Source: Mytilus californianus | Lineage: Eukaryota | Reading direction: 5' to 3' | Assembly: GCF_021869535.1 (NCBI RefSeq) | Contig: NW_026262709.1 | Coordinates: 248,001-312,000, forward strand | DNA length: 64,000 nucleotides | Shown here: positions 1 to 42,455 of the stretch, in pieces | How positions within the stretch are numbered: position 1 is the stretch's first letter | How the letters are laid out: each line of letters opens with the position of its first letter | Notes under the pieces: generated by a model | What the model saw: the letters and a program-made list of their open reading frames with translations, nothing else | What the model was told of the DNA's origin: nothing | Databases searched by the model: none | Program-made: the position numbers and the translations under genes

Positions 1-425
1 TTGATTGATTGATTGTTGGTTGCTTAACGTCCAGTGGCAAATATTTCATGCATATTCAGGACGAGAACAAATTAACAATAAATACAATAGGTAGGTTCTG
101 TAATAGGGGCGTCCGGGATTTAGGTCGGAGAAATTTAGACTGCCACGGGGAATGAGGGTATATTGGATAGGGACAGAAATTTTGCCTTGCAACAGGTCAC
201 CTACGGACCCCTCAAAGAGTTGTTACAAGGGTTCTTAACGTGCAAAGAGCGTGGCACTCTCTTTACACGAGGCATCGGATTTAACGTCCCCATTCTGACC
301 GGACGTGGCTGCAAATTTGTACATCCCGCACAGCCAAACGGACGCCCCACTTTAGCAAGGGTTTTACTGCCGGTCGGAGGAAGACCAATGGTGACCATAC
401 TTCTATACCCCAGTCACCCTTGGGG
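1..425 (-). mobile_element. ~420-bp SINE-like element (family S1), copy 1, full length
   Basis: Minus-strand sense starts CCCCAAGGGTGACTGGGG and ends ...GGACGTTAAGCAACCAAC(AATC)n; near-identical to nine other copies in 1-16.5 kb. Confidence 0.85.
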
Positions 426-1643
426 TATACTAGATGCAGAAGATAAACTAGTTTTATTAGATGCAGATGAAGGAGGACTATTGGAGATGGAAGAATCATC
501 AATGTCACTGGGAAGATCCCAGACAGATTCACCGCCCCAACTGTCTGATTTAACTGTATCTTTTTTATTTGATTTCTTTTTTTCATTTTTTTTAGATGAT
601 GACATTGAGCTCTGTAAGGAAGATTGAGTTGACTGAGTACTGGTTTTAGAAGGTGTTGGTTTTCTTGGAATTAATATTTTATCGTTAGGTTCTGTTTCAA
701 CAGGCAGCATTGTAAATGTCTCAGCATCAATTGGCCAGGTCATGCGAGTTTGTGTATGCTCGTGACTGAATGAGCGGACAACTTTGCTGGCGTACGATGG
801 TCTGTTCGAAACAAGGAGATCATTCGAAACAGAAGCTATCTGTTTAGCTTTTGGGTAACTGATGTTTCTTTCTGTTTTAATTTTGATAATATTTTTTTCT
901 TTAAGGTAAACAGGGCAGTCCCTAGATGATGAAAAATGGGATTCACCACAGTTTACGCATTTAGAAGATTCAGAGCTACAGGTTGTTCCCTCGTGTCCTT
1001 CGTCAGAACACTTGAAGCATCTCTGCGTACCACGACATTGTTTGCTTCCATGACCAAACTTTTGACAAGTGAAGCATCGAATTGGGTTAGGGATAAACCT
1101 GTCAACTCTGATTCCTAAGCAACCTAAAGTAATAGATGGAGGAGGAGTTGGAGTTCTAAATGTCAAAAGATATGTATTTAATTTGATTATATTTCCATTC
1201 TTTTTTATTTGAAATCTAACAACATCAGTTACACCTTGGCTTGAAAGTTCCTCACAGATTTCTTCCACGGTAAGGTCACCAAGGTATTGACTTCTGTCTC
1301 GAATGATCCCCTTACAGCTGTTCAAACTGTTGTGAGGAGAGGCAGAAACAGGAAAGTTTGTAATTGTTGTCAGTGTAAGCAAATTTGTTGATTGACTTTT
1401 GTTGGAACATTCAACCAACAAATTGCCTGATCTCATTTTTGAAACTTTTTTTACAGTACCAGCAACGCTTTGAATTTGTTTGTGAATCACAAAGGGAGAT
1501 ATTTTGGAAATTGGTTTTTCATCTGTTCCTTTTATTACAATAAATCTGGGCCAACTGTCATCTTCCTGACAGGGCACTGAATCATCACATTTTCTTTTTT
1601 TATGTATTAAAGCTGATTTAGAGGGTTGGTTTTGTTGTGCCAT
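414..1643 (-). CDS. Non-LTR retrotransposon ORF1 (gag-like, three CCHC zinc knuckles; I/Nimb-like group)
   Basis: Knuckles CFTCQKFGHGSKQC, CFKCSDEGHEGTTC and CVNCGESHFSSSRDC; WPRFIVI...ISPFVIHKQI...RSGNLLVEC N-terminal region typical of I-group ORF1; likely ATG at 1643 (MAQQNQ...). The ORF runs into S1 copy 1 and stops there. Confidence 0.85.
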   Translation of the reverse strand: MAQQNQPSKSALIHKKRKCDDSVPCQEDDSWPRFIVIKGTDEKPISKISPFVIHKQIQSVAGTVKKVSKMRSGNLLVECSNKSQSTNLLTLTTITNFPVSASPHNSLNSCKGIIRDRSQYLGDLTVEEICEELSSQGVTDVVRFQIKKNGNIIKLNTYLLTFRTPTPPPSITLGCLGIRVDRFIPNPIRCFTCQKFGHGSKQCRGTQRCFKCSDEGHEGTTCSSESSKCVNCGESHFSSSRDCPVYLKEKNIIKIKTERNISYPKAKQIASVSNDLLVSNRPSYASKVVRSFSHEHTQTRMTWPIDAETFTMLPVETEPNDKILIPRKPTPSKTSTQSTQSSLQSSMSSSKKNEKKKSNKKDTVKSDSWGGESVWDLPSDIDDSSISNSPPSSASNKTSLSSASSIPQG

Positions 1644-2403
1644 AGGAAATGAGAAAGATTCACCATTCTTGTCATCCACCCACCTCGGAGTGCCTACAAG
1701 GGCGATGCTGTGTTTCCGTGGCGAGCCGGGGTCAAGTGCTAATGCTGAAAACGAGCTCCAAGTATAACATGTATAACGTAGCTGGTCCCCAAAATTAGCA
1801 CCCAAGATCCACTGCGGAAAGCACCAGATGTTCCAAGAATGGTATACTCAAGCAGAGCGTATCCATCAAGCGAAATAGAAAGCGTACCACTTGATTGACC
1901 CATGAGCCATCGCCTTCTTCAGTTATCCGAAATATAAATAGCTTTATTTAAAACACTTGTGTATATCATGAAAATTGTTACAAGAAAGCTTATTGTTGAG
2001 GAGTAACTGAAGGGCTCGACATGACCAGCCGATTGATCGAACCGGGTCCATCCGACCTCCCGTTTAGATGATATTGGAGCCAAAGCAGCTTATTGAACTA
2101 TAGTCTTGTCCGTCCGGGTATTTTCTGACCGTAAGGAGTCTGGCTACAGCCCTCATCCGCAAGGATCTCGTCAACCACCGACACGGGTAGCAACCCACGG
2201 CCAATGGGTTGGAGAGCCTATTTTATTCAAAACATCGGGCAACTCGTACGATGTTCGGATCACTTTAGTCTGGTCTCTACCCTTCGACCTGTCCAGCATG
2301 GGTAACCCTACCAGGAGACGAAGCTCCAACTGGCATAGCTCTTGGGGTCACTGAGACACGCAAGCCCCCCGACCACGGCAAGGATAGCGATCCACCGGGG
2401 GGG
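426..2403 (-). mobile_element. 5' portion (5'UTR + ORF1) of an I/Nimb-like LINE
   Basis: GC-richer ~760-nt 5'UTR beginning at a C7 run (2403), followed by intact ORF1; ORF2 is not in the window. Confidence 0.8.
2256..2403 (-). ncRNA. Putative HDV-like self-cleaving ribozyme at the LINE 5' end
   Basis: Manual fold of the minus strand: P1 CCCC(C)GG/UCGGGG(G); P2 GGAUCG (2393-2388)/UGAUCC (2262-2257); P3 CUA/UGG; L3 UCCUUGCCG; GG for P1.1; J4/2 CUAAAG with candidate catalytic C at 2268; ~95-nt P4 insert. Confidence 0.7.
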
Positions 2404-2823: not shown

Positions 2824-3251
2824 GATTGATTGATTGATTGTTGGATGCTTAACGTCCAGTGGCAAATATTTCATGCATATTCAGGACGAGAACAAATTAA
2901 CAATAAATACAATAGGTAGGTTCTGTAATTGGGGCGTCCGGGATTAAGGTCGGAGAAATTTAGACTGCCACTGGAAATGAGGGTATATTGGATAGGGACA
3001 GAAATTTAGCCTTGCAACAGGTCACCTACGGACCCCTCAAAGAGTTGTTGCAAGTGTTCTTAACGTGCAAAGAGCGTGGCACTCTCTTTACACGAGGCAT
3101 CGGATTTAACGTCCCCATTCTGACCGGACGTGGCTGCAAATTTGTACATCCCGCACAGCCAAACGGACGCCCCACTTTAGCAAGGGTTTTACTGCCGGTC
3201 GGAGGAAGACCAATGGTGACCATACTTCTATTCCCCACTCACCCTTGGGGG
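2824..3251 (-). mobile_element. S1 SINE-like copy 2
   Basis: Full length; 12-bp TSD TACATTATAAGA at 2814-2825 and 3253-3264. Confidence 0.9.
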
Positions 3252-3938: not shown

Positions 3939-4366
3939 TTGATTGATTGATTGATTGTTGGTTGCTTAACGTCCAGTGGCAAATATTTCATGCATATTCA
4001 GGACGAGAACAAATTAACAATAAATACAATAGGTAGGTTCTGTAATAGAGGCGTCCGGGATTAAGGTGGGAGAAATTTGGAATGCCACGGGAAATAAGGG
4101 TATATTGGATAGGGACAGAAATTTAGCCTTGCAAAAGGTCACCTACGGACCCCTCAAAGAGTTGTTGCAAGTGTTCTTAACGTACAAAGAGCGTGGCACT
4201 CTCTTTACACGAGGCATCGGGTTTAACGTCCCTATTCTGACCGGACGTGGCTGCAAATTTGTACATCCCGCACAGCCAAACGGACGCCCACTTTGGCACG
4301 GGTTTTACTGCCGGTCGGAGGAGGACCAATGGTGACCTTACTTCTATTCTCCAGTCACCCTTGGGG
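3939..4366 (-). mobile_element. S1 SINE-like copy 3
   Basis: Full length; degraded TSD (CAGTACAGTCTTT / CAGAAAGTCTTT). Confidence 0.85.
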
Positions 4367-5837
4367 TGCAGAAAGTCTTTGAAGTTGCGAAACCAACGTC
4401 TTGACCAATAGACAGAAAATTGACAAAACCAAGGTACAAATTTGATGCAACAAAAGACAACCAGTAGTATATAGACATGTGCTTACAATTAATTTCTGCA
4501 ATTTTTCATTAAAATCTTTACGATAATCGTTTAGCTTACGGGGCAGTCCCAGACCCTCCTCCTTACAATTTGTTTTCCAATGGATATGCTACTGGGCTAA
4601 TGGCTTTTTAAAGCACGAAAACATACAAGAGACTCAGAAGTACCGATCTAAGAGTAGTTGCAGTTATTAGAAGCTATGTAAAGTGAAAACGATTACATGA
4701 CTGATTTATTAGTAATAGTACGGTAAATATTTTCCACTTATAAATTTCTACATTTACAATTTTTGAATGTAGTTCGTGTACTTTTAAATTTTTTCATTTC
4801 TATATATCTTATGGAGGAGGAAACGGTCGAAGGGTCAGATGACTCTGAAAAAGGAGTTGACGTAACATATTTGTTTATGCCATCAATAGAAAAGATGAGT
4901 TGAAACGTCACAAAGAAAGTGTTTAAAAAACGTATTTTTTTTCATATCATTTTACAATGTTAATGTTAAAGTATTACATTAACATACAGAAAGCCATAGA
5001 GTGCGTTGTACTTTAATGTAAATAAATCAAAAAAATATTTTGGTAAACAGTTCATTGTGTACAATGTACAAATTTTACTACAACTCTCAGATGATTTTCG
5101 ACTGTTCGATGATTGAGATGTCTGCTTTACCGTATGATAATCATCTGCAATCAATCAAGAGGATGATTAAGAATGCAATAAAAAAGACTTACTGAAAAAG
5201 ATCTAGCAGGTGTTTGCACGTTAAGTACAATCCGACCTTCACAAATAGGTACATCTATACTTAACCTAGAATCAATTGCTTCCAGTTAAAAAATTAATCA
5301 TATGCATTAATCAAGGAACAGAGAAATAGAAGACTTTTATTTGACATTTAACACCCTGACAGAGCAAAGATTTATCCACAAAGCCATGCAATTCCAAACT
5401 TGTAAATATTACATTTGTGCCAAACATTTGTCATATGTCAAGGAAGCTGATTGAAAAGGGCGAAATTTACAAAAAGTGTGTTTCACTCCCTGTTGATGAT
5501 GGAAGCATCGTCGTTCTGAGGTTGCATGGACATTGGTAGCAGTACATGTCTACTCTTTTATGGTCAAACATCCATGATAAGTTTGCGTGACGAGCTTACA
5601 AGTAGTTTTGCAGTGCATGTTATCAAGTTTTTACTTACCCTTAAATATTTGGGTCAAGTTGTTCATTAGTGTTGTCAATGTTAACAAAATAAGTAACTGT
5701 TGTACTTTAAATTTGTCAAATGGGGAATTTAGAGGAAGTTCAAGAATTGGCTGAGATGGCATATTGTTTAATCAAACTTGCTTGACAACCACATTTGACT
5801 CTCAGTAACTCTACTTCTAAGCCATAACAAAGATTTA

Positions 5838-6229
5838 TTGATTGATTGATTGTTGGTTGGTTGCTTAACGTCCAGTGGCAAATAGTTCATGCATATTCAG
5901 GACGAGAACAAGTTCACAATAAATACAAAAGGTAGGTTCTGTAATAGATTAAGGGATTGAGGTCGGCGAATTTTAGACTGCCACGGGAAATGAGGGTATA
6001 TTGAAATTCAGCCATGCAACAGGTCACCTACGGACCCCTCAAAGAGTTGTTGCAAGGGCACTCCCTTGACACGAGGCATCGGATTTAACGTCCCCATTCT
6101 GACCGGACGTGGCTGCAAATTTGTACATCCCGCACAGCCAAACGGACGCCCCACTTCGGCACGGGTTTTACTGCCGGTCGGAGAGAGACCAATGGTGACC
6201 ATATTTCTATTCCCCAGTCACCCTTGGGG
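5838..6229 (-). mobile_element. S1 SINE-like copy 4
   Basis: Both ends present with small internal deletions; 12-bp TSD CCATAACAAAGA at 5822-5833 and 6231-6242. Confidence 0.9.
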
Positions 6230-6880: not shown

Positions 6881-7212
6881 TTGATTGATTGATTGTTGGT
6901 TGCTTAACGTCCAGTGGCAAATATTTCATGCATATTCAGGACGAGAACAAATTGACAATAAATACAATAGGTAGGTTCTGTAATAGGGGCTTCCGGGATT
7001 AAGGTCGGAGAAATTAGACTGCCACAGGAAATGAGGGTATATTGGATAGGGACAGAAATTTAGCCTTGCAACAGGTCACCTACGGACAGCTCAAAGAGTT
7101 GTTGCAAGGGTTCTTAACGTGCAAAGAGCGTGGCACTCTCTTTACACGAGGCATCGGATTTAACGTCCCCATTCTGACTAGACGTGACTGCGAATTTGTA
7201 CATTCCGCACAG
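6881..7212 (-). mobile_element. S1 SINE-like copy 5 (head missing)
   Basis: Tail and core present; similarity stops at ~7212 where LINE ORF1-like sequence begins. Confidence 0.8.
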
Positions 7213-10157
7213 TCAGACCTCTCAATTTTACTTTCTAAAGAAACAATACAACCATCAAAATGAAACTACCTAAGTGTTCATTCGACGAAGAAGCGTATAA
7301 GAAATTAAGTTACCTCCCCTGGATAATGTTTCGAAAAAACAAAGACATTCCTTACGAAGAAATCAAAACAAACCAATACAGAAATGCTGCTAAAATGTAC
7401 AGTTTCAAAACAGATGGAAACCGTCTCCTGATATGGATCAAAGCTTTGATGCTCCGATATTAGAAACAACTCGGAAGTGACCCAAATTATTTAATAAACT
7501 GGACCGATAAACGACCATCAGACACTCGTGACGAAATACAAATAGATGTTGATGCACTAATTAAAGGGAGTAAAGAAGTAGATCACAGAATATACACATT
7601 AACAATTAATTTAAGCACAGGAACAATTACAGTGCAAGGAACACATTACAAATATTTTGGCACAAATGAATTTCCAGTCTTGAAACAATTTGTAAATAAA
7701 AGTTCAAAACTTAGTAGTGAAAACAAAAACGAGGCATCAAACAACATGACCCACCCCAACACAGAAGAAAATAAAGACGAACAGGCACTTGATAATAGTC
7801 AGACTACTCTCAAAGAATTGAAACAAACTGACGATATAAACGTCCAAGAACAGACAATATCTGACGTAACTATTATGAACTTAGTTTCACAAACAGATTC
7901 TCTTTCTGACACTTTTCACACACCAGCAATATCCAAAGAAAATATCCTGGAGCTCGACAATGCTGAATTACATCGTTGCCTAGCTGAAAGCACCCCAAAA
8001 ATGAAAACTAAAAAGAATCCAGATATGGAAATTAAAAAACTATGGGAAAAATTTGATAACCAAGAAAAATTCAACAACAAAATCATTAAATTGACCTCTG
8101 CGCTTCAAAAACAATTTTGTGAAATCACAGTATTGCAATCAAAAACTAACCAACCCATTTTGAAAGAAAACACTGAAGCATTAGAACATTTCAATACAGA
8201 GAAAAACAATATTATATCAGAACTAAAAACCTGCCTCTCTGAGAAAAACAAAATTATTGCAAATCTTCAGGAACAATTAAGAATTCAGGAACAAACTATT
8301 TTAGGCATGAAAGTTGAACAAAGCACTCTTACTACTCAGTTTCAAGAAGAACAAGCTGTCTCAGAGACCAGAAAAGAAACTATAAATAAACTAGAACTTG
8401 AATTAAATCAAGTGACCACCACAATTGCTAAAAGCAAAACAATCAAACCAACACCTGAGAAGGATAAATTACAATCAGTTGTAAGTGATCGTGTGAAAGT
8501 CAATGAGTCAACACACAACAGATTTAGTGCATTAGAAGATCAAAATACAGAAGAAACCAGAAACATAGTTAACCATAAATCACTAGATGCATTAATTATA
8601 ACCGACTCTCATGGAAAAGATCTTGACCCGTCTAAACTTTATAGGTACAGAAAAGTAAATGTACATGTTCTCCCAAGAGGTAAAAAGACTATTCAAGGTG
8701 CCATTGAATATATTGAACAAACTGATATTCAAGCCAAAAATATTCTTGTCATGGTTGGTAGCAACGATCTTTCACAGAATAGATCACCAGATACCACAGC
8801 AGAACACCTCAGTACTCTCAAGAATCTAGTCAACAACAGATTTCCAAATACTAACATTCATGTTTTTCCTCTATTTCATCGTCTCAATGAAGAACAATTT
8901 AACCAAGATGTAGATACAGTGAACACGAGGCTGGAACGCCTAGTCTCCAATTCTCTATCCCTAGTCCGAAACGACAACATCAATGTTAAAAACCACCGTT
9001 ACTATCACACCGATGGAGTACACCTATCGACAGTGGCAATTTCGAACTTGTACGTGCAATAAAATCCCACATGAATCCAGTTCTTGGACTAAAAGACTAC
9101 CATAACTACAATCAATCTGAAAATATTCATCAATTAACAAAAAACTATTTGATACTCTAATAAGACCCATAAGTACTTATGGATCTGAAATATGGATTAG
9201 TGACTACAATATAAAAGACTCAAATATTGATAAATTACCTTTTGAAAAAATTCTTAATAAATTCTGTAAAAATATTTTAGGAGTTCACAAGAGAAGTTCA
9301 AATATGGCAGTGAACTGTGAATTAGGAAGACAACCTACTTTGAATCATATACTAATCCTAGCCCTTAAATATTATGATCGACTTAAACAGCTTCCATCTG
9401 ACAGACTGCTTAGTGAAATATATAAACTAGATCATTCATTATATACTGATGGACACAGATCTTGGCACAAATTTATCTCGAACTCTATTGAAAAATATAA
9501 TTATATAACAGACAATAATATTAATTTAAAGAACTTAAAGGAAAATATTAATAACCAACATTCTAATAACACTTTGCATAATCTAAAAAAATTACGTTCT
9601 ATTGAACAAGACAATAAATTACATTTCTATGCCAATATTTATTCAGAATAATTTAAATTGCAAAATTATCTATCGTATAAATGTTCTAATATAACAAGAA
9701 ATCTTACAAAATTAAGAATTAGTTCCCACCCTCTTTTGATTGAAAAGGGTAGATATTTCAGACCAAAAATTAAGAGAGAAAACAGAATATGCTTGAACTG
9801 CAATCAAATAGAGGATGAAAAACATTTCCTTATTTATTGCAAAAAATTTGAAAATTATAGAAAACAACTATTTAATAAACTAAATATTAATTCACAAGAT
9901 CTGTGCCCTGAAAAAGTTATGAAAACCATTATTAGTTTACTTAACCCACAAAATATTGATGATACAAAAAATATATGCCATTACATACAATTATGCTTTG
10001 AATCTTTGTAATTTTATTCATTTAACCTTGATTTGATATTTTGTCATACATAATATATATTTATCTATCTGATGTAATATCATGTTAATGTGGGGGAAGA
10101 CATCATTATACTTTGTATTGATTTTCCTGATTTAATAAAACTTGAAACTTGAAACTT
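7213..10157 (+). mobile_element. Internally deleted non-LTR retrotransposon (CR1/L2/RTE-X-type, esterase ORF1), lacking EN and RT
   Basis: ORF1 with coiled coil and SGNH motifs joined at ~9140 to an ORF2 C-terminal remnant (FDTLIRPISTYGSEIW...ELGRQP...KLRISSHPLLIEKGRY...CLNCNQIEDEKHFLIYC); AATAAA and (AAACTTG)n tail at 10134-10157. Confidence 0.8.
7632..9062 (+). pseudogene. LINE ORF1 with coiled coil and SGNH/GDSL esterase domain (frameshifted at both ends)
   Basis: Motifs ITDSHGK, VGSNDL and TDGVHLS; upstream fragment at 7260-7463; frameshift near 9045. Confidence 0.75.
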
Positions 10158-11362: not shown

Positions 11363-11715
11363 CCCCAAGGGTTACTGGGGAATAGAAGTATGGTCACCAA
11401 TGGTCCGTCCGACCGGCAGTAAAACCCTTGCGAAAGTGGGGCGTCCGTTTGGCTGTGCGGGATTTACAAATTTGCAGCCACGTCCGGTCAGAATGGGGAC
11501 GTTAAATCCGATGCCTCGTGTAAACAGAGTGCCACGCTCTTTGCACGTTAAGAACCCTTGCAACAACTCTTTGAGGGGTCCGTAGGTGACCTGTTGTAAG
11601 GCTAAATTTCTGTCCCTATCCAATATACCCTCATTTCCCGTGGCAGTAAATTTCTCCGAACTTAATCCCGAAAACCCCTATTACAGAACCTAACTGTTGT
11701 ATGTATTGTTATTTC
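11363..11715 (+). mobile_element. S1 SINE-like copy 6 (tail lost, internal indels)
   Basis: Starts CCCCAAGGGTTACTGGGG; homologous through the core. Confidence 0.85.
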
Positions 11716-13199: not shown

Positions 13200-14800
13200 T
13201 TACCAGTTCCAGGGAGATAAACAACCAGATAACCAATGGAATGAAAAGAGCATATCAGGGACACTACGATAGCATAAGTGTCAAAATATCCGTCCTACGT
13301 GTAATAGTTGAATGGACGGAGAACCCCCTCTGATCACTCAAACCTTTGCAAAACAACAGTCTCCCCGATTTTGATATGCAAACAACCTTAATCATGTGTA
13401 CTGCGGAGATGACACCTCCCTTCTGATACCAGAAGTGGAGGGGTTTCCTTTTGATGACAAGAGTGAATCCTAGGAAATTATTTAATACCCTCCACTATAG
13501 AGCCGGTAGAGATATGTACCAGAGGGGGACAGTTCCAAGTCTGTTTTTAGGGTCTCATCATTTCCCATGCACCGCTAAATAATTTCTGCGCTCATTTGTC
13601 TTTTGGGAAAACCTTTAGTAACACTGAGTACGAATGTTTCAATAGTGCCTGAATGTTGTGACAGGTGTGTGCCGTCATGTCTGAATAAATTCGACTCTGA
13701 GGCTTAGATGGTTGGATACATTATACATGTTATAATGTATCGACCTTCTTTCTCCATAATCCCCAAGGGTGACTGGGGAATGAAGTATGGTCACCATTGG
13801 TCTTCCTCCGACCGGCGGTAAAACCCTCGTCAAAGTGGGGCGTCCGTTTGGCTGTGCGGGATGTACAAATTTGCAGGCACGTCCGGTCAGAATGGGGACG
13901 TTAAATCCGATGCCTCGTGTAAAGAGAGTGCCACGCTCTTTGCACGTTAAGAACCCTTGTAACAACTCTTTGAAGGGTCCGTGGGTGACCTGTTGCAAGG
14001 CTAAATTTCTGTCCCTATCCAATATACCCTCATTTCCCGTGGCAGTCTAAATTTCTCCGACCTTTATCCCTTAATCTATTACAGGACCTACCTATTGTAT
14101 TTATTGTGAACTTGTTCTCGTCCTGAATATGCATGAAATATTTGCCACTGGACGTTAAGCAACCAACAATCAATCAATCAATCTTCCTCCATAAACGATC
14201 TTACAGCACAGTTGACTCTTTTTTTTTTTTGGGCTATTTCTACTTACTTTGACCTTAATGTTCCATGCTAATAGGGCCTTGGTAATATATCTAACGATAT
14301 GATTTAAATGTCAGCTGCGGAAATTTTCATTCTTAAAAATGAGCATTTGATGTTCTCGATTAAATCTGTTGACTTCATAAGCACCAAATCATTTGCACCT
14401 AGATGTACAAAGATATAATTAGGGGCTGGCCACTTTTTTATTTCACTTTCAAAAGATAAATCCAGATCTTTCCATTTCATTCCTGATTTGTTATCTATTT
14501 AATTTGTACTCCTAGCCTGTTCATATTAAGAATTTTCCCATCAGAATGGCTAGCAGCTGTTACATCAGCACAGTTGACTGATATAATGTTGTAGGCATAA
14601 GTTTAGTTCTGTTCTATATGTACATTTAAACAAAAATGTATTTTCAACAAGGAATTTTTATTAAGTGCTCAAACGCAACTGACGATCACCTACCTTTCCC
14701 ACTTTTTAATAGCTTCGTCATTAATACCACGATTGCTCGGCAACATTACCATTTTATAAATACCCAGCAATGCCAGCAATGCTTTACCACTGACGAAGCC
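13200..14800 (-). pseudogene. Degenerate DIRS/Ngaro-like (tyrosine recombinase) retrotransposon relic
   Basis: Minus-strand fragments: GINDEAIKKW (YR C-terminus-like, ~14700), HLGANDL (14385-14405) and HDGTHLS (13659-13679) of an SGNH-like ORF; many stops; interrupted by S1 copy 7. Confidence 0.5.
13761..14183 (+). mobile_element. S1 SINE-like copy 7
   Basis: Full length; imperfect TSD sharing CTCCATAA. Confidence 0.9.
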
Positions 14801-14836
14801 TTTTTTTTTTTATCACGGACTGTTTAATTATAATAA

Positions 14837-15225
14837 CCCCAAGGGTGACTGGGGGATAGAAGTATGGTCACCATTGGTCTTCCTTCGACCGGCAGTAAAA
14901 CCCTTGCTAAAGTGGGGCGTCCGTTTGCCTGTGCAGGATGTACGAATTTGCAACCCCGTGAAAAGAGAGTGCCACGCTCTTTGCACGTTAAGAACCCTTG
15001 TAACAACTCTTTGAGGGGTCCGTAGGTGACCTGTTGCAAGTCTAAATTTCTGTCCCTATCCAATATACCCTCGTTTCTCGTGGCAGTCTAAATTTCTCCG
15101 ACCTTGACCCCGGACGCACCTATTACAGAACCTACTTATTGTGTTTATTGTTAATTTGTTCTCGTCCTGAATATGATTGAAATATTTGCCACTGGACGTT
15201 AAGCAACCAACAATCAATCAATCAA
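14837..15225 (+). mobile_element. S1 SINE-like copy 8 (internal deletion)
   Basis: 13-bp TSD TTTAATTATAATA at 14823-14835 and 15226-15238. Confidence 0.9.
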
Positions 15226-15245
15226 TTTAATTATAATAGTTATAT

Positions 15246-15667
15246 CCCCAAGGGTGACTGGGGAATAGAAGTATGGTCACCATTGGTCTTCCTCCGACCG
15301 GCGGTAAAACCCTCGTCAAAGTGGGGCGTCCATTTGGCTGTGCGTGATGTACAAATTTGCAGCCACGTCCGGTCAGAATGGGGACGTTAAATCCGATGCC
15401 TCGTGTAAAGAGAGTACCACGCTCTTTGCACGTTAAGAACCCTTGTAACAACTCTTTGAGGGGTCCGTAGGTGACCTGTTGCAAGGCTAAATTTTTGTCC
15501 CTATCCAATATACCCTCATTTCCCGTGGCAGTCTAAATTTCTTCGACCTTAATCCCTTAACCTATTACAGACCCTACCTATTGTATTTATTGTGAACTTG
15601 TTCTCGTCCTGAATATGCATGAAATATTTGCCACTGGACGTTAAGCAACCAACAATCAATCAATCAA
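15246..15667 (+). mobile_element. S1 SINE-like copy 9
   Basis: 13-bp TSD TATAATAGTTATA at 15232-15244 and 15668-15680. Confidence 0.9.
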
Positions 15668-16023
15668 TATAATAGTTATAAATTTTTGATCCCCATCAAT
15701 TGATACAAAATCCAGGGTAAGATGGAGTTTTTAATGTTTTGCAGCAATGTATTGACACATCTCATCTTTCTGGAATTTGACGTGTTAATAACTGTTCAAT
15801 GATCTTGTTCATTTTGCGTCCGCTGAATTGGCCATTATTTTGAGAATTAAAGAGATATGGAAATGTGGAATTTGTCAAAGAGACAACAATCCGACTATAA
15901 AGCAGACAACAGCCGAAGGCCACCAATCGGTCGTCAATGCAGCGAGAAAATCCCGCACCCGAGGTGCTATACGTCGTATCTCGGTATTTTATACATCCAA
16001 CATTTATGCATTAATTTATTTAT

Positions 16024-16446
16024 GATTGATTGATTGTTGGTTGCTTAACGTCCAGTGGCAAATATTTCATGCATATTCAGGACGAGAACAAATTAACAAT
16101 AAATACAGTAGGTAGGTTCTGTAATAGAGGCGTATGGGGTTGAGGTCGGAGAAATTTAGACTGCCACGGGAAATGAGGGTATATTGGATAGGGACAGAAA
16201 TTTAGCCTTGCAACAGGCCACCTACGGACCCCTCAAAGAGTTGTTGCAAGGGTTCTTAACGTGCAAAGAGCGTGGCACTCTCTTTACACGAGGCATCGGA
16301 TTTAACGTCCCCATTCTGACCGGACGTGGCTGCAAATTTGTACATCCCGCACAGCCAAACGGACGCCCCACTTTGACGAGGGTTTTACCGCCGGTCGGAG
16401 GAAGACCAATGGTGACCATACTTCTATTCCCCAGTCACCCTTGGGG
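16024..16446 (-). mobile_element. S1 SINE-like copy 10
   Basis: 13-bp TSD ATTTATTTATGAT at 16014-16026 and 16450-16462. Confidence 0.9.
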
Positions 16447-23111: not shown

Positions 23112-23673
23112 CTGAAATACTGTTCATGATTAGATTTCTCGAGACAATATACTGCTGTAAACTATAGTTTAAAGTTTACAAAATTTCTGACCTCAGTGCT
23201 TCACAGTTGCATAAGTTACGTCAACATGAAGCAATAACTGTTTGCGAGGCAAAAAGTAGTAAAAGTTCTCTGAAATCCGTGACGTAACTGCAAATTCACA
23301 TGTTACAAATGTATGTTCTCTCCATAAGAAGGAGTCAACTCGTTCTCACTTTCATCAATATAAGTATTAGTTCATCTTGAGAAATTCTTATATCAAGGTC
23401 GAAGATGATTAACGACCACTTGTAACGTTGGATTTTCCAGTAGTTAGTGCAGGTTGATAACTTTTAGTGATAATAATCGATCCAGTGTAAGCCGTGTGTT
23501 AAACTTCACCCCCTTCTCAAGAAAAAATACTCACAAAAAACACCAAAAATAGAAATACAAACGATTGTTTGCATTCAGCTAAGGTTTTATTTTATTGTTA
23601 TATGTTCTCGTATAACAAACGTCAGTTTATCAATATTTTCGATTGTGTATAAAAATAATTGTGACAAACAAAC

Positions 23674-38412: not shown

Positions 38413-40134
38413 AATTTGCGTGTTTTACATACCTTAGAAATTAGCTCCCAATAGCACTTTAATATTTACTTCAACATTTTTACATTCAACATGTTTAAAT
38501 TATTAAACACAATTATTAAGAAAAACATTTATAGATTATATATATTGTTTAGAGTCCAATAAAAAGAGGTTAATTTGGAACAATTTTTTTAACGTCATAA
38601 TTTGAGTTAAATATTATCATGATTACTGAAATTATCTATGTATACGTAAACAAATTAAATTCATTTTTTCCAACACGCAAATTTCATGTTACCACGAAAA
38701 CTTTGTTATTCCAAGATCATAATAATATATTGCCTTACGGATGTTTTATATGAATGAGTTTAAATGTTTTAGTTGAATACATTAACCATGTTAACAAAAA
38801 TATTCTTTTCAGATCCTGTTGAGCATGTCATTCGTGCATTTTGTGTATTTATCGTATTTACCGTTTACAACAATTCTTGTTTACACACGTTTATTTCATT
38901 GCGGTTGTGTATACAATTTTTGATCAATAAATGTAAGAAACAAATTGATCTTGCGATCAGCAGGCAATGGATACAGGTATGTGCGTATTTATTTCTATTT
39001 TTACAACATTGTTTACAAAAACGAAAGTGACATCAATATTGTTCCGATTTATCATTAAATTATAATTAAAGTTTATGAGGTAATTAAGCGAAAAAAGTAT
39101 AAACAAAATGTATATTTACTTACTGTCGTCTAAAAATAATGTGGAATCAATAATCTACATTACACTGACAAAACAGGGACTCTATATTATAATTTTGAAG
39201 TAACGGTTCACATGAGGTCATCACGTCACATGGTATATATTTGATAATAGTATCTGATAAGTACCAATTACTCAATTGTATAATTTATTGGCTGTATACA
39301 TCGTACAATACGTGTAGTTCTGTATATAAATTGATAAGGAAAAAAAACGCGATTTGATTAACATGATTAATCATCTCAAATATTTAATAATAAAAGGGGG
39401 ATGGGTAAGATCTTTTCTGTTAAGGTGTTTTATGCTTTTTTGAACATTTGTTAACTGAAAATATATGTGCTGTTAACTGTATATGTTATTGACTGTTTTT
39501 ATACGACCGCAAAAAAATTGTGTTCGTATATTGCCATCACGTCGTCGTCGTCCGAAGACATTTGGTTTCCGGACAATAACTTTAGTTTAAGTGTATGGAT
39601 CTCTATGAAATTTAAGCAAAAGATTCAATAACACAAATGGAATTTTTTTTTCCTTAAGGTTTAACAAAATTATCAATTTTCCGTTATTTCTTTTAGGGGT
39701 GTAAATTTTTTTTCTCCAAGATTTAACAAATTATCAATTTTCAAAAATAAAAATAGGGGGTCACAATTTATTTTGCTAGTTCTTTCTATATAGTCTGAAA
39801 ACAGATTTACTAAGTACTGCGCAACAGCACAGTGTATTGCACAACAGCAAGAAATCTTCAATTGAATATAAATTCAAATCATATAACCAATTGCAAGTTC
39901 TTTGACTACATTTATTCTGTGTCAGAATACCTATAATGTGTCAAATATTTAATTACATATATCATTTGCACATTTGGACCATTTCATTTCACGTATGCTC
40001 AATATTTAAAACAGAGCCCACACTATAATATTTACCGGGTTAACTTTGTTCACAAAGCCATTATCATTTCTCACCGTCAGGAACCGAAACTCCAGGGGTT
40101 GACGGGGTATAAAAATATAGTCATCCGTTGGACT

Positions 40135-40503
40135 TCTTCCGTGTGACAGTTAAAGTCTTGCTAAAACAGGACGTTCATATGGCTTTGGGGATCTATAAAT
40201 ACGCAGTAACGTCCTCGTGTGGAATGAGTGCCACACTCTCTGCAGTTAAAAAACCAACGCTTACAACAATCTTTGAGGAGTTCGTTGTTGGCCTGTTGAA
40301 AGGCATAATTTCTGTCTCTATCGAAGTTTACCTCATTTTCCAGTCTTGCCAGTGGTAGACGACATTTTACCCACCCACGTTAATCCTGGTCGACCCATTT
40401 TTCAAAACAGACCTTTTGTATTAACAGTTAATTGGTTTATCGTCCTGAATATGCATGAAATATTTGCCATTTGACGTTAAGAAAACAACAATCAATCAAT
40501 CAT
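40135..40503 (+). mobile_element. Old diverged S1 copy
   Basis: Degenerate core; tail CGTCCTGAATATGCATGAAATATTTGCC...(AATC)n. Confidence 0.7.
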
Positions 40504-40595
40504 CAGTAGGATGATAAGATAAATACATATTGTTAACAGAATATTGATATCTCTTTATATTCAAAGTTCAATATATACATTTCATCAATTTTCCA

Positions 40596-41021
40596 CCCCA
40601 AGGGCGACTGGGGAAAAGAAATATGGCCACTCTAGGTCTTCTTCCGACCTGCAAATAAACTCTTGCAAAACTAGGGGTGTTCGTTTGGTTGTGCGGAATT
40701 TACAAGTACGCAGCCACGTCCGGTCAGAATGGGGACGTAAAATCCGATGCCTCGTGTAGAGAGAGTGTCACGCTCTCTGCACGTAAAGAACCATTGCAAC
40801 AACTCTTTTTGAAGGGTCCATAGATGTCCTTGTTGCAAGGCAAAATTTCTGTCCCTATTCAATATTCCCTCATTTTACAGTGGCAGTCAAAATTTCCCCG
40901 ACCTTTATCCTGTACGACCTCTATACAGAACCTACCTATTGTATGTATTATTAATGTGTTCTCGTCCTAAACATGCATGCATTATTTGCCGCTGGACGTT
41001 AAGCAACTAATATTCAATCAA
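40596..41021 (+). mobile_element. S1 copy, moderately diverged, full length
   Basis: Starts CCCCAAGGGCGACTGGGG; ends GGACGTTAAGCAAC...CAATCAAT. Confidence 0.85.
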
Positions 41022-42455
41022 TGAAATCATTTTTTCTATCATTGAACGACATTGTAAACTCTAGAAGTAGGGCCTGTATATTACAATCACCCTGTCCGTC
41101 CGTTTATCAAACAAATATGTTTGTCGCACTTTTCTTAAACTGCTTTACCGAATGATTTCGTATTTAGTCAGCAGCCTGACAGTCATGAGTTGGAACGTGT
41201 GAGAAATTTTTGGATATGTCAGCCATCTACTTCCTGTTTGCGCGCCGATACCGTGATTTTTTTAATATACGGAATGAACTTAAAATTTTCGTCACACATG
41301 TTCTTTTATACTACTGAACGGAAGGACTTTATATATATTGTCAGCAATTCAACAGCGATGAGGTGTGAGTGTGTGCACATGTCGAACGAGTGGGGATATG
41401 CTTAGCTCGGTAACGCGTACATGCTTGTTTTATCGCATTATAGTTCAACGAGTCAGAACCGATACCAAAAGATATTTGCATTGTGACTATACGGCGATAC
41501 GAGACGTATCACATTTTTGTCCTCTAATTTTATTGTAAAGAAGACCGAAAAAATAAATATAAAACAATTCGATCATCTTACCTAAGAAAGGTTCTACTGT
41601 ACTTTTTCGTTAGAATTATTTATATTTGAAGATAAAGGCAATAATGTCAAAACAATGGATTGTTGAGGTAATGTTAAGCAGAAAACAATAATAGATGATA
41701 AAATTCTAAATTGAATAAAATAGTTATAGTTAATTAAATAGGGAGTGATAGGAATTGAAAATAACAAATATGAAAATCTCAGAGGAAGTATGTGTTAGCA
41801 AAATATCAGAAAGTTATTCGCTCGATTGAAAATATAATTTATTGCATCTCCTCATAAAGTTCATAAATACCTTAAATACACTCAATGCTTCACTTACTTC
41901 GACTGGAGATCAAATTAAAAAGTAACTTTATGTTAAGCACAAGTTATATGTTCATGTATCTGTTCCCAATCGGGAACCTCGTCAGTGGTTGTATTTGCAA
42001 TAACTTACTATTTTTGGTTGCTCTTCAGTGAATAACGATGGATTTCAGATTCTTAATAGTCTCTTTACAAATACATTTTCAATTTTTTAAAGTTTACTAA
42101 ATGGTATGGGCTATGTTCATTGTTGAAGGTCGTCCAGTGCCCTTCATAGTTGTTTACATTCTCGCTCTTTCGTCTCTGGTGGATAGTTGCCTCAATGGCA
42201 ATCATACCACATCTCCTAATCATGCATGCTTATGTTTACTTTCAGATTTAGAGTGTACAATATTGAATAAACCACTTCATTATAATGGTCAAAACCTTTG
42301 TGTGGACCTCTAGATGCTTTGGTTTATGTTTTGTTGGGTTGCTTTCTGATTGATGAATACCCCTCATCTATTTTATATTTATGTTATTTATCAACACGAA
42401 GTAGGCATATTGTAGAATATATTAGCACCCACACTTTATTTTAGATAGCAATAGA

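Follow-up and report, generated by a model that had tools for sequence, protein, structure and literature searches.

Probable HDV-like ribozyme with an enlarged P4 domain at the 5′ end of an I-group-like LINE in Mytilus

The stretch of Mytilus californianus DNA analyzed here (64 kb, referred to below as the window, whose coordinates are used throughout) carries near its beginning a LINE on the minus strand, the first open reading frame of which is interrupted by a SINE. The features of this region, and the other copies of the SINE in the window, are the following.

1644 to 2256, minus strand: rest of the LINE 5′ untranslated region, downstream of the predicted ribozyme; contains blocks conserved out to abalone LINEs
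414 to 1643, minus strand: LINE ORF1, from the first ATG; three CCHC knuckles
1 to 425, minus strand: SINE copy, in the same orientation as the LINE
2826 to 3250, 3943 to 4367, 5842 to 6229, 6881 to 7218, 11363 to 11714, and 13761 to 14181: SINE copies
14836 to 15225, 15241 to 15667, 16023 to 16446, 40089 to 40502, and 40595 to 41025: SINE copies

On the minus strand, a leader of approximately 610 nt separates the predicted ribozyme from ORF1. The SINE, which runs from 425 to 1 and has the same orientation, interrupts ORF1 at approximately residue 405 of 506 to 509, and the nearest relatives of the encoded protein are "CCHC-type" proteins from Mytilus galloprovincialis, Mytilus trossulus, and Mytilus edulis. 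A full copy of the LINE, approximately 6.1 kb in length (L021), is present on a marine-metagenome contig. Its ORF2 encodes 1,223 amino acids with Exo_endo_phos (APE), RVT_1 (RT), and RVT_3 (RNase-H-like) domains, the RVT_3 score barely exceeding the cut-off, and the ORF2 of L006 carries RNase_H. The combination of a CCHC ORF1 with an APE/RT/RNase-H-like ORF2 therefore identifies an I-group-like LINE, as judged by domain content alone. A previous annotation made from the letters of this DNA only (the sequence-only reading) had called the element I/Nimb-like; the domains fit the I-group part of that label, which is thereby checked in part and at the level of domains only. The family is abundant in Mytilus genomes, and subfamilies with 80% identity over 800 nt are approximately 96% identical in their first ~250 nt.

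Two observations concern the surroundings of the LINE. The contig that carries the full copy continues into aquaporin-like (MIP) and family-2 glycosyltransferase genes (L021, 498 to 2435), and these flanking genes may be host sequence or may reflect a chimeric assembly. The SINE, approximately 425 nt in length, is abundant, with at least 12 copies in the 64 kb, all of which start with CCCCAAGGG. Its 3′ tail (AAGCAACCAACAATCAATCA, followed by CAAT repeats) is identical to the 3′ end of the full LINE (L021, 2680 to 2700), and the LINE headed by the putative ribozyme is therefore likely to be the partner of the SINE.

The 5′ end of the LINE can be defined without reference to any RNA structure. 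In approximately 10 independent copies and the window, homology ends at C2402, and each copy has its own upstream flank. When copies were compared with the window, the break was found at 2402 in L001, L005, L008, L020, and L021, of which L005 and L008 are copies from M. galloprovincialis, and in three contigs from RNA libraries homology breaks at 2402, 2402, and 2403. Most copies start with CCCUCCGG. Two further copies (L003 and L004) are 5′-truncated and provide no 5′ end, and neither do the contigs of other ORF1 relatives (L007, L010, and L011), being truncated or of insufficient length. The LINE begins at C2402, which is also the first base of P1 in the structure described below. The sequence-only reading had placed an HDV-like fold exactly at the element boundary, in agreement with independent copies that stop at 2402 (2403 in one). 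It had also predicted an RNA 5′ end within the C run from 2400 to 2403; the end predicted here lies in that run and is now specified as C2402.

Trimming of element 5′ ends by HDV-like ribozymes is known from R2, RTE, and L1Tc/ingi. The 146 nt of the minus strand from 2402 to 2257 contain all elements of the HDV-like nested double pseudoknot in the correct order, as listed here from the 5′ end of the putative RNA.

2396 to 2402, minus strand: 5′ strand of P1, CCCCCCG (CCCUCCG in most copies); pairs at seven of seven positions with 2371 to 2365
2394 to 2395, minus strand: J1/2, GU; GU(G) likewise follows P1 in the abalone ribozyme
2386 to 2393, minus strand: 5′ strand of P2, GGAUCGCU; eight of eight pairs (one G.U) with 2264 to 2257, present in the minimum free energy (MFE) fold
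2383 to 2385, minus strand: 5′ strand of P3, AUC; pairs with GGU, in one of three registers
2375 to 2382, minus strand: L3, CUUGCCGU; UUGCCGU invariant in all eight aligned sequences
2372 to 2374, minus strand: 3′ strand of P3, GGU; adjoins the 3′ strand of P1, invariant, in a CGUGGU context as in the Rfam HDV consensus
2365 to 2371, minus strand: 3′ strand of P1 (P1′), CGGGGGG; pairs at seven of seven positions with the 5′ strand
2269 to 2364, minus strand: P4 domain of 96 nt; branched interior, base helix, and unpaired linkers
2265 to 2268, minus strand: J4/2, CUAA; C2268 invariant in all eight sequences, CUAA also standing at this position in the Rfam HDV consensus and L1Tco
2257 to 2264, minus strand: 3′ strand of P2 (P2′), AGUGAUCC; pairs with GGAUCGCU

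Read along the minus strand, the module is thus CCCCCCG GU GGAUCGCU AUC CUUGCCGU GGU CGGGGGG, followed by ~96 nt and CUAA AGUGAUCC. The cleavage site is predicted to lie directly 5′ of C2402, and C2268, which opens J4/2 (C-N-R-A), is predicted to be the catalytic cytosine. Two features of canonical HDV-like ribozymes are absent. The pair at the base of P1 is C2402-G2365 in place of a G1.U wobble, and CU follows P1′, where a 2-bp P1.1 is absent and at most one pair, G2379-C2364, is possible; because G2379 and C2364 are both invariant, that pair stays a candidate for a single-pair P1.1. P3 can be drawn in two registers besides the one listed, namely, CUA (2387 to 2385) with UGG (2375 to 2373) and CC (2383 to 2382) with GG (2374 to 2373). 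In L008 and L019, P3 is ACC/GGU, one base further 3′, like in the abalone and trypanosome ribozymes. These relatives favor a P3 adjoining P1′, which in the window would be AUC/GGU or CC/GG.

The P4 domain is built on a base helix of GUCUC (2357 to 2353) and GAGAC (2277 to 2273) and lies between two unpaired linkers, CUUGCGU 5′ of it and CAGA 3′ of it, four unpaired nucleotides lying between C2268 and the base helix. A consensus fold of six sequences contains two compensatory pairs in P4 and a swapped hairpin (GGAG/CUCC versus GGAC/GUCC). The base helix itself is invariant and therefore uninformative with respect to covariation. Additional outer pairs (UUG/CAG) were considered for P4 and rejected, as they are broken in L019.

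Most of the individual parts drawn in the sequence-only reading are found where it had put them: the C run, GGAUCG/UGAUCC, CUA/UGG, UCGGGGGG, and CUAAAG with C2268. Its insert of ~95 nt in P4 matches the ~95 nt between P1′ and J4/2, a domain now delimited as 96 nt. Other parts had to be redrawn. The P2 pairs GGAUCG/UGAUCC do form and extend to 8 bp (2393 to 2386 with 2264 to 2257), and this leaves the canonical 4-nt J4/2 CUAA; the CUAAAG proposed for J4/2 is accordingly shortened, while the invariance of its C2268 was confirmed in eight sequences. The strands CUA and UGG proposed for P3 are present, but relatives carry ACC/GGU next to P1′ instead. An eighth P1 pair, G2395.U2372, is C/U in L019 and hence lost there.

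The evidence that these helices are under selection comes from a diverged lineage, L019. This sequence was found with a pattern applied to metagenome contigs in which the sole fixed parts were the end of L3, the 3′ strand of P3, and the linker after P1′, with P1′ itself entered as N7; the 5′ strand of P1 and both strands of P2 lay outside the pattern. The scan gave 24 hits, most of them chance matches in bacterial DNA and six of them real. P1 of L019 is CUCUACC/GGUAGAG, with Watson-Crick pairs at seven of seven positions. Compared with CCCUCCG/CGGGGGG, three positions are changed on both strands, and a fourth is changed from U.G to U-A. P2 is GGGCU/AGCCC in place of GGAUCGCU/AGUGAUCC, and P3 is ACC/GGU. 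In an alignment of eight sequences, 88% of P1 positions are paired in register, versus 40 to 67% when the 3′ strand is slid by one to three columns, and the P1 covariation score was reached by 1 of 500 shuffles. Across lineages P2 is GGAUCGCU/AGUGAUCC in mussels, GGGCU/AGCCC in L019, and AAGAGC/GCUCUU in abalone, a comparison of few sequences. Our results show that P1 and P2, as predicted, have been maintained by compensatory changes in a diverged lineage, and it is essentially L019 that carries this result. Covariation across family copies had been suggested as a check on the fold, and the re-pairing of P1 and P2 in L019 answers it in the affirmative. The compensatory changes in turn point to selection on RNA pairing, beyond selection on the DNA sequence. 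Uncompensated changes also occur in single copies (C.A and C.U in P1 of L008, changes in the 3′ strand of P2 in L005, and G2366A and G2370A in one contig); these are expected of decay and yield no support.

L019 is an element of approximately 191 nt (2874 to 3065) on a marine-metagenome contig, with the direct repeat GTATTATG on both sides. Its 5′ end is therefore the first base of P1. As an observation in its own right, this retroposon consists almost entirely of the predicted ribozyme, with a tail of ~45 nt; as a non-autonomous element with a ribozyme at its head, it can be likened to the NARTc and SIDER elements of trypanosomes. A sister copy of L019, L026 (= L032), has lost its 5′ half; this copy (7313 to 7490) has a poly(A) end, and P1 and P2 are gone.

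LINEs of the same group from abalone provide a second comparison. In three copies, L009 from Haliotis rufescens and L036 and L037 from Haliotis cracherodii, mutual homology stops exactly at G1 of GGCACUC. This sequence forms the 5′ strand of a P1 (GGCACUC/GAGUGCU) with G1.U, followed by P2 (AAGAGC/GCUCUU), P3 (ACC/GGU), L3 (UCCUCGU), a GG after P1′ for P1.1, and J4/2 (CUAAUA). The abalone sequence scored 29 bits with the Rfam model HDV-F-prausnitzii (E = 3.8e-4), 21.9 bits with HDV_ribozyme, and 15.1 bits with drz-agam-1. All three scores are under the gathering thresholds (44 and 50 for the first two models), and the alignments span the full model core, starting at the bases that border the first G of the element. 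These data show that the abalone LINEs start exactly at what is, by prediction, a compact canonical HDV-like ribozyme. The abalone 5′ untranslated regions have several blocks in common with that of the mussel LINE. Taken together, the abalone and mussel 5′ ends suggest that this LINE group characteristically carries an HDV-like ribozyme at its 5′ end, the mussel form being, by its sequence, a derived version.

Some related modules in the leaders were also noted. A "CCCC" module in L006 and L009 was tried as the 5′ end of a distant lineage and rejected: its strands are in the wrong order, there is no room for P3, and, as extra abalone copies revealed, it sits downstream of the real ribozyme candidate. 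The 5′ head of the SINE (window 425 to 330, minus strand) matches the module that directly follows the ribozyme in abalone LINEs. The matching segments are the following.

L006, 2222 to 2300: module matching the SINE head
L009, 2394 to 2475: module matching the SINE head

This module begins with a C run and continues with a covarying hairpin (GGUGAC/GUCACC, GGGGACGU/ACGUCCUC, and UGUGGAA/UUCCACA), a loop with GGGGUAGAAUA, ACCCC, UUGCG, a short hairpin, CUAAA(G/U), and GGGG. Its UUGCGUGUC...GACUAAA also matches the P4 flanks in the mussel ribozyme. We considered the SINE-head module as an HDV-like ribozyme and rejected it, the strand order being wrong. Within the mussel LINE, UUGCCGUGGUCGGGGGGCUUGCGUGUC in the ribozyme (2380 to 2355, minus strand) resembles, by eye, UUGGCCGUGGGUUGCUACCCGUGUC approximately 165 nt downstream in the leader (2215 to 2185), a likeness that may represent an old internal duplication. 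The hairpin of the downstream copy covaries, again by eye, across mussel, L006, and abalone (AACCCA/UGGGUU, GCGGCC/GGCUGC, and GCAACC/GGUUGC).

Descriptor searches indicate how much weight the fold can bear. A purely structural HDV descriptor matches approximately 70 places on both strands of the 64-kb window, and another loose descriptor matches 16 to 18 per strand; with so many matching sites, the fold alone means little. A strict descriptor, for which 0.025 sites are expected per shuffled window, missed the candidate, as its rule demanded that P4 close next to J4/2. A unified descriptor derived from the relatives, which has the 3′ strand of P3 adjoin P1′ and puts C-W-A-A ahead of P2′, recovers the candidate together with four other, AU-rich sites in the window, which are chance matches. 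A second descriptor hit, at 23541 on the minus strand, has a P1 composed entirely of G.U pairs (GUUUUUU/AGGGGGU) and was set aside as a chance match in low-complexity sequence. The significance of the candidate rests on its base-exact position at the element end and on covariation, not on the descriptor match. The Infernal-type search with HDV models that the sequence-only reading had proposed as a check did not recover the candidate, the HDV families of Rfam giving no match in the window (lenient scans of 12 kb, and of 181 nt at E ≤ 10). The nested MFE is no better than that of shuffles (z = +1.25, calculated without pseudoknots), a value that is uninformative here because the structure is a pseudoknot. 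A scan of viral contigs for the P4 block found nothing.

Among known systems, the mussel version most resembles the tested ribozymes of L1Tc/ingi elements, not the canonical HDV type. L1TcRz cleaves at +1 with Mg2+ and leaves a 5′-OH (PMC3185411), and +1 is likewise the cleavage site in several relatives from the ingi clade, for example L1Tco and NARTco (PMC4035085 with supplementary file 1). These ribozymes begin with C1 and have a 7-bp P1 (CCCUGGC/GCCAGGG); CGUGGU precedes P1′, P1.1 consists of one pair, and CUAAG or CAAAG precedes P2′ (PMC3185411; PMC4035085 supplement). The same 77 nt of L1Tc double as an internal promoter (PMC3185411, PMC3383444), and some SIDER versions of trypanosomatids are inactive in vitro despite an adequate fold (PMC4035085). 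In comparison with this set (L1Tc and NARTc of Trypanosoma cruzi, L1Tco and NARTco of Trypanosoma congolense, and SIDERs), the mussel module likewise stands at the very start of a non-LTR retrotransposon that encodes APE, RT, and RNase H domains, as is the hallmark of L1TcRz/Pr77. It shares the C1 start, the C-rich 7-bp P1 (CCCUGGC there, CCCUCCG in mussel), CGUGGU directly before P1′, at most a single P1.1 pair, and spacers of ~7 nt ahead of P4 and ~4 nt after it; J4/2 is CUAAG or CAAAG there and CUAA(AG) in mussel. Short non-autonomous carriers exist on both sides, NARTc and SIDER in the case of L1Tc and the ~191-nt L019 element here. The start with C rather than G, which the sequence-only reading had likened to L1Tc, is thus confirmed, within an architecture near that of the active L1Tc, L1Tco, and NARTco ribozymes. 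Because those ribozymes are active without G1.U and a 2-bp P1.1, the lack of both in mussel is no argument against activity. The hosts differ, kinetoplastids in the case of L1Tc and a mollusc here, as does P4, which is a short hairpin in L1Tc but a branched domain of 96 nt in mussel, so that the predicted mussel ribozyme measures 146 nt, against 77 nt in L1Tc. Both promoter activity and cleavage have been demonstrated for L1Tc; in mussel, cleavage is predicted and a promoter role is possible.

With canonical ribozymes (the R2 ribozyme, drz-Agam, HDV, Rfam RF00094/RF02682/RF01787, and the abalone relatives), the mussel version has in common the topology, a 7-bp P1, a candidate 3-bp P3 next to P1′, and a J4/2 CUAA with its C; in Drosophila R2, too, the element starts precisely with its ribozyme (PMC3774820). 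It differs from them in having C1-G instead of G1.U, no GG/CC P1.1, UUGCCGU in L3 instead of UCCUCGU, and a very large P4. These Rfam models align to the abalone copies; the mussel version goes undetected by Rfam. Large HDV-like ribozymes with peripheral domains (PMC4908430) resemble it in that a structured domain enlarges an HDV-like core.

We conclude, with a probability of about 0.72, that the minus strand from 2402 to 2257 encodes a self-cleaving ribozyme of the HDV-like type, with which a Mytilus I-group LINE begins and which makes up its first 146 nt. The core of the sequence-only reading, an HDV-like fold with a large P4 at the 5′ end of such a LINE, is upheld by the boundary, by the compensation in L019, by the abalone relatives, and by the likeness to the active L1Tc-type ribozymes. 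Its further proposals, liberation of the LINE from host read-through transcripts and promoter or translation signals in P4, stand as conjecture. Transcription would enter from upstream host DNA or start at a promoter a few bases upstream, and self-cleavage of the RNA would then follow 5′ of C2402, with C2268 and Mg2+ taking part in general acid-base catalysis. The product would be a 5′-OH RNA that begins with base 1 of the element. With the cut at this position, every new copy would carry the complete ribozyme and no flanking sequence.

The principal alternative is a 5′ module without catalytic activity, either a conserved structured RNA or an internal promoter acting at the DNA level, in which the HDV-like drawing is a relic or a look-alike; its roles could be transcription start, binding of an ORF protein, protection of the 5′ end, or translation. 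Conservation across the whole 250 nt, including P4, is greater than a ribozyme core would call for, neither the G1.U wobble nor a 2-bp P1.1 is present, and there is no Rfam match. A promoter role is plausible beside or instead of cleavage, given that the 77 nt of L1Tc are an internal promoter (PMC3185411, PMC3383444), and well-folded SIDERs of trypanosomatids are inactive in vitro (PMC4035085). The three RNA-library contigs also read through the site, crossing 2402 into flanking DNA. Contigs cannot show RNA ends, and these represent uncut RNA or DNA carry-over. Against a non-catalytic module stand the compensatory changes in P1 and P2, which imply selection on RNA pairing, and the agreement to the base between the start of the element and P1, which is predicted by cleavage but not required by a promoter. 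In addition, ribozymes of the L1Tc type with a C start and a single P1.1 pair are active, and a canonical ribozyme is predicted at the same place in the abalone relatives. We regard the non-catalytic alternative as unlikely.

Two other explanations carry much less weight. The register of the sequence-only reading, with a P1 of 6 to 7 bp from 2400/2401, a P1.1 of G2366/G2365 with C2383/C2382, and cleavage inside the C run, draws on the complementarity of CC in L3 to GG in the window and in most Mytilus copies. It is very improbable, as all copies keep C2402 and C2401, which could not be inherited if cleavage fell 3′ of them. In L019, moreover, the change of 2366 from G to A is compensated by a change of 2401 from C to U, for which reason G2366 and G2365 are assigned to P1 as pairing partners and are not free for P1.1 as had been supposed; the former P1.1 pair C2382-G2366 reads C/A there, while 2401/2366 is U-A, so that P1.1 is broken and P1 is kept. 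The register was thus off by 1 to 2 nt and is corrected to 7 bp, 2402 to 2396 with 2371 to 2365. We give slightly less credence still to the idea that a permissive motif happens to fit this GC-rich stretch. The ease with which loose descriptors find matches (~70 places in the window, or 16 to 18 per strand) speaks for it, but the match falls exactly on an independently defined element end, covaries in L019, and has its canonical counterpart at the same place in the relatives.

A broader possibility, which we consider quite doubtful, is that the mussel module is a true homologue of Pr77/L1TcRz. A cassette of promoter and ribozyme would then be ancient in I/Ingi-group LINEs, from kinetoplastids to molluscs, P4 would have been recruited for an additional role, for instance the translation start of an uncapped 5′-OH RNA or binding of the ORF1 protein, and the cassette could travel alone as a retroposon of ~190 nt (L019).

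The literature searched contained no description of an HDV-like ribozyme in a bivalve, or in any I-group LINE of molluscs. The mussel ribozyme would open no new kind of mechanism, and it marks a class of sequences that is missed by Rfam models. A ribozyme at the 5′ end would explain why all full-length copies of the LINE start at a common base. The predicted forms, from canonical and compact in abalone, through the L1Tc-like form of mussels, in which P4 measures 96 nt, to a short retroposon consisting of the ribozyme only, would constitute a natural series for how much of the HDV core can go while the fold stays.
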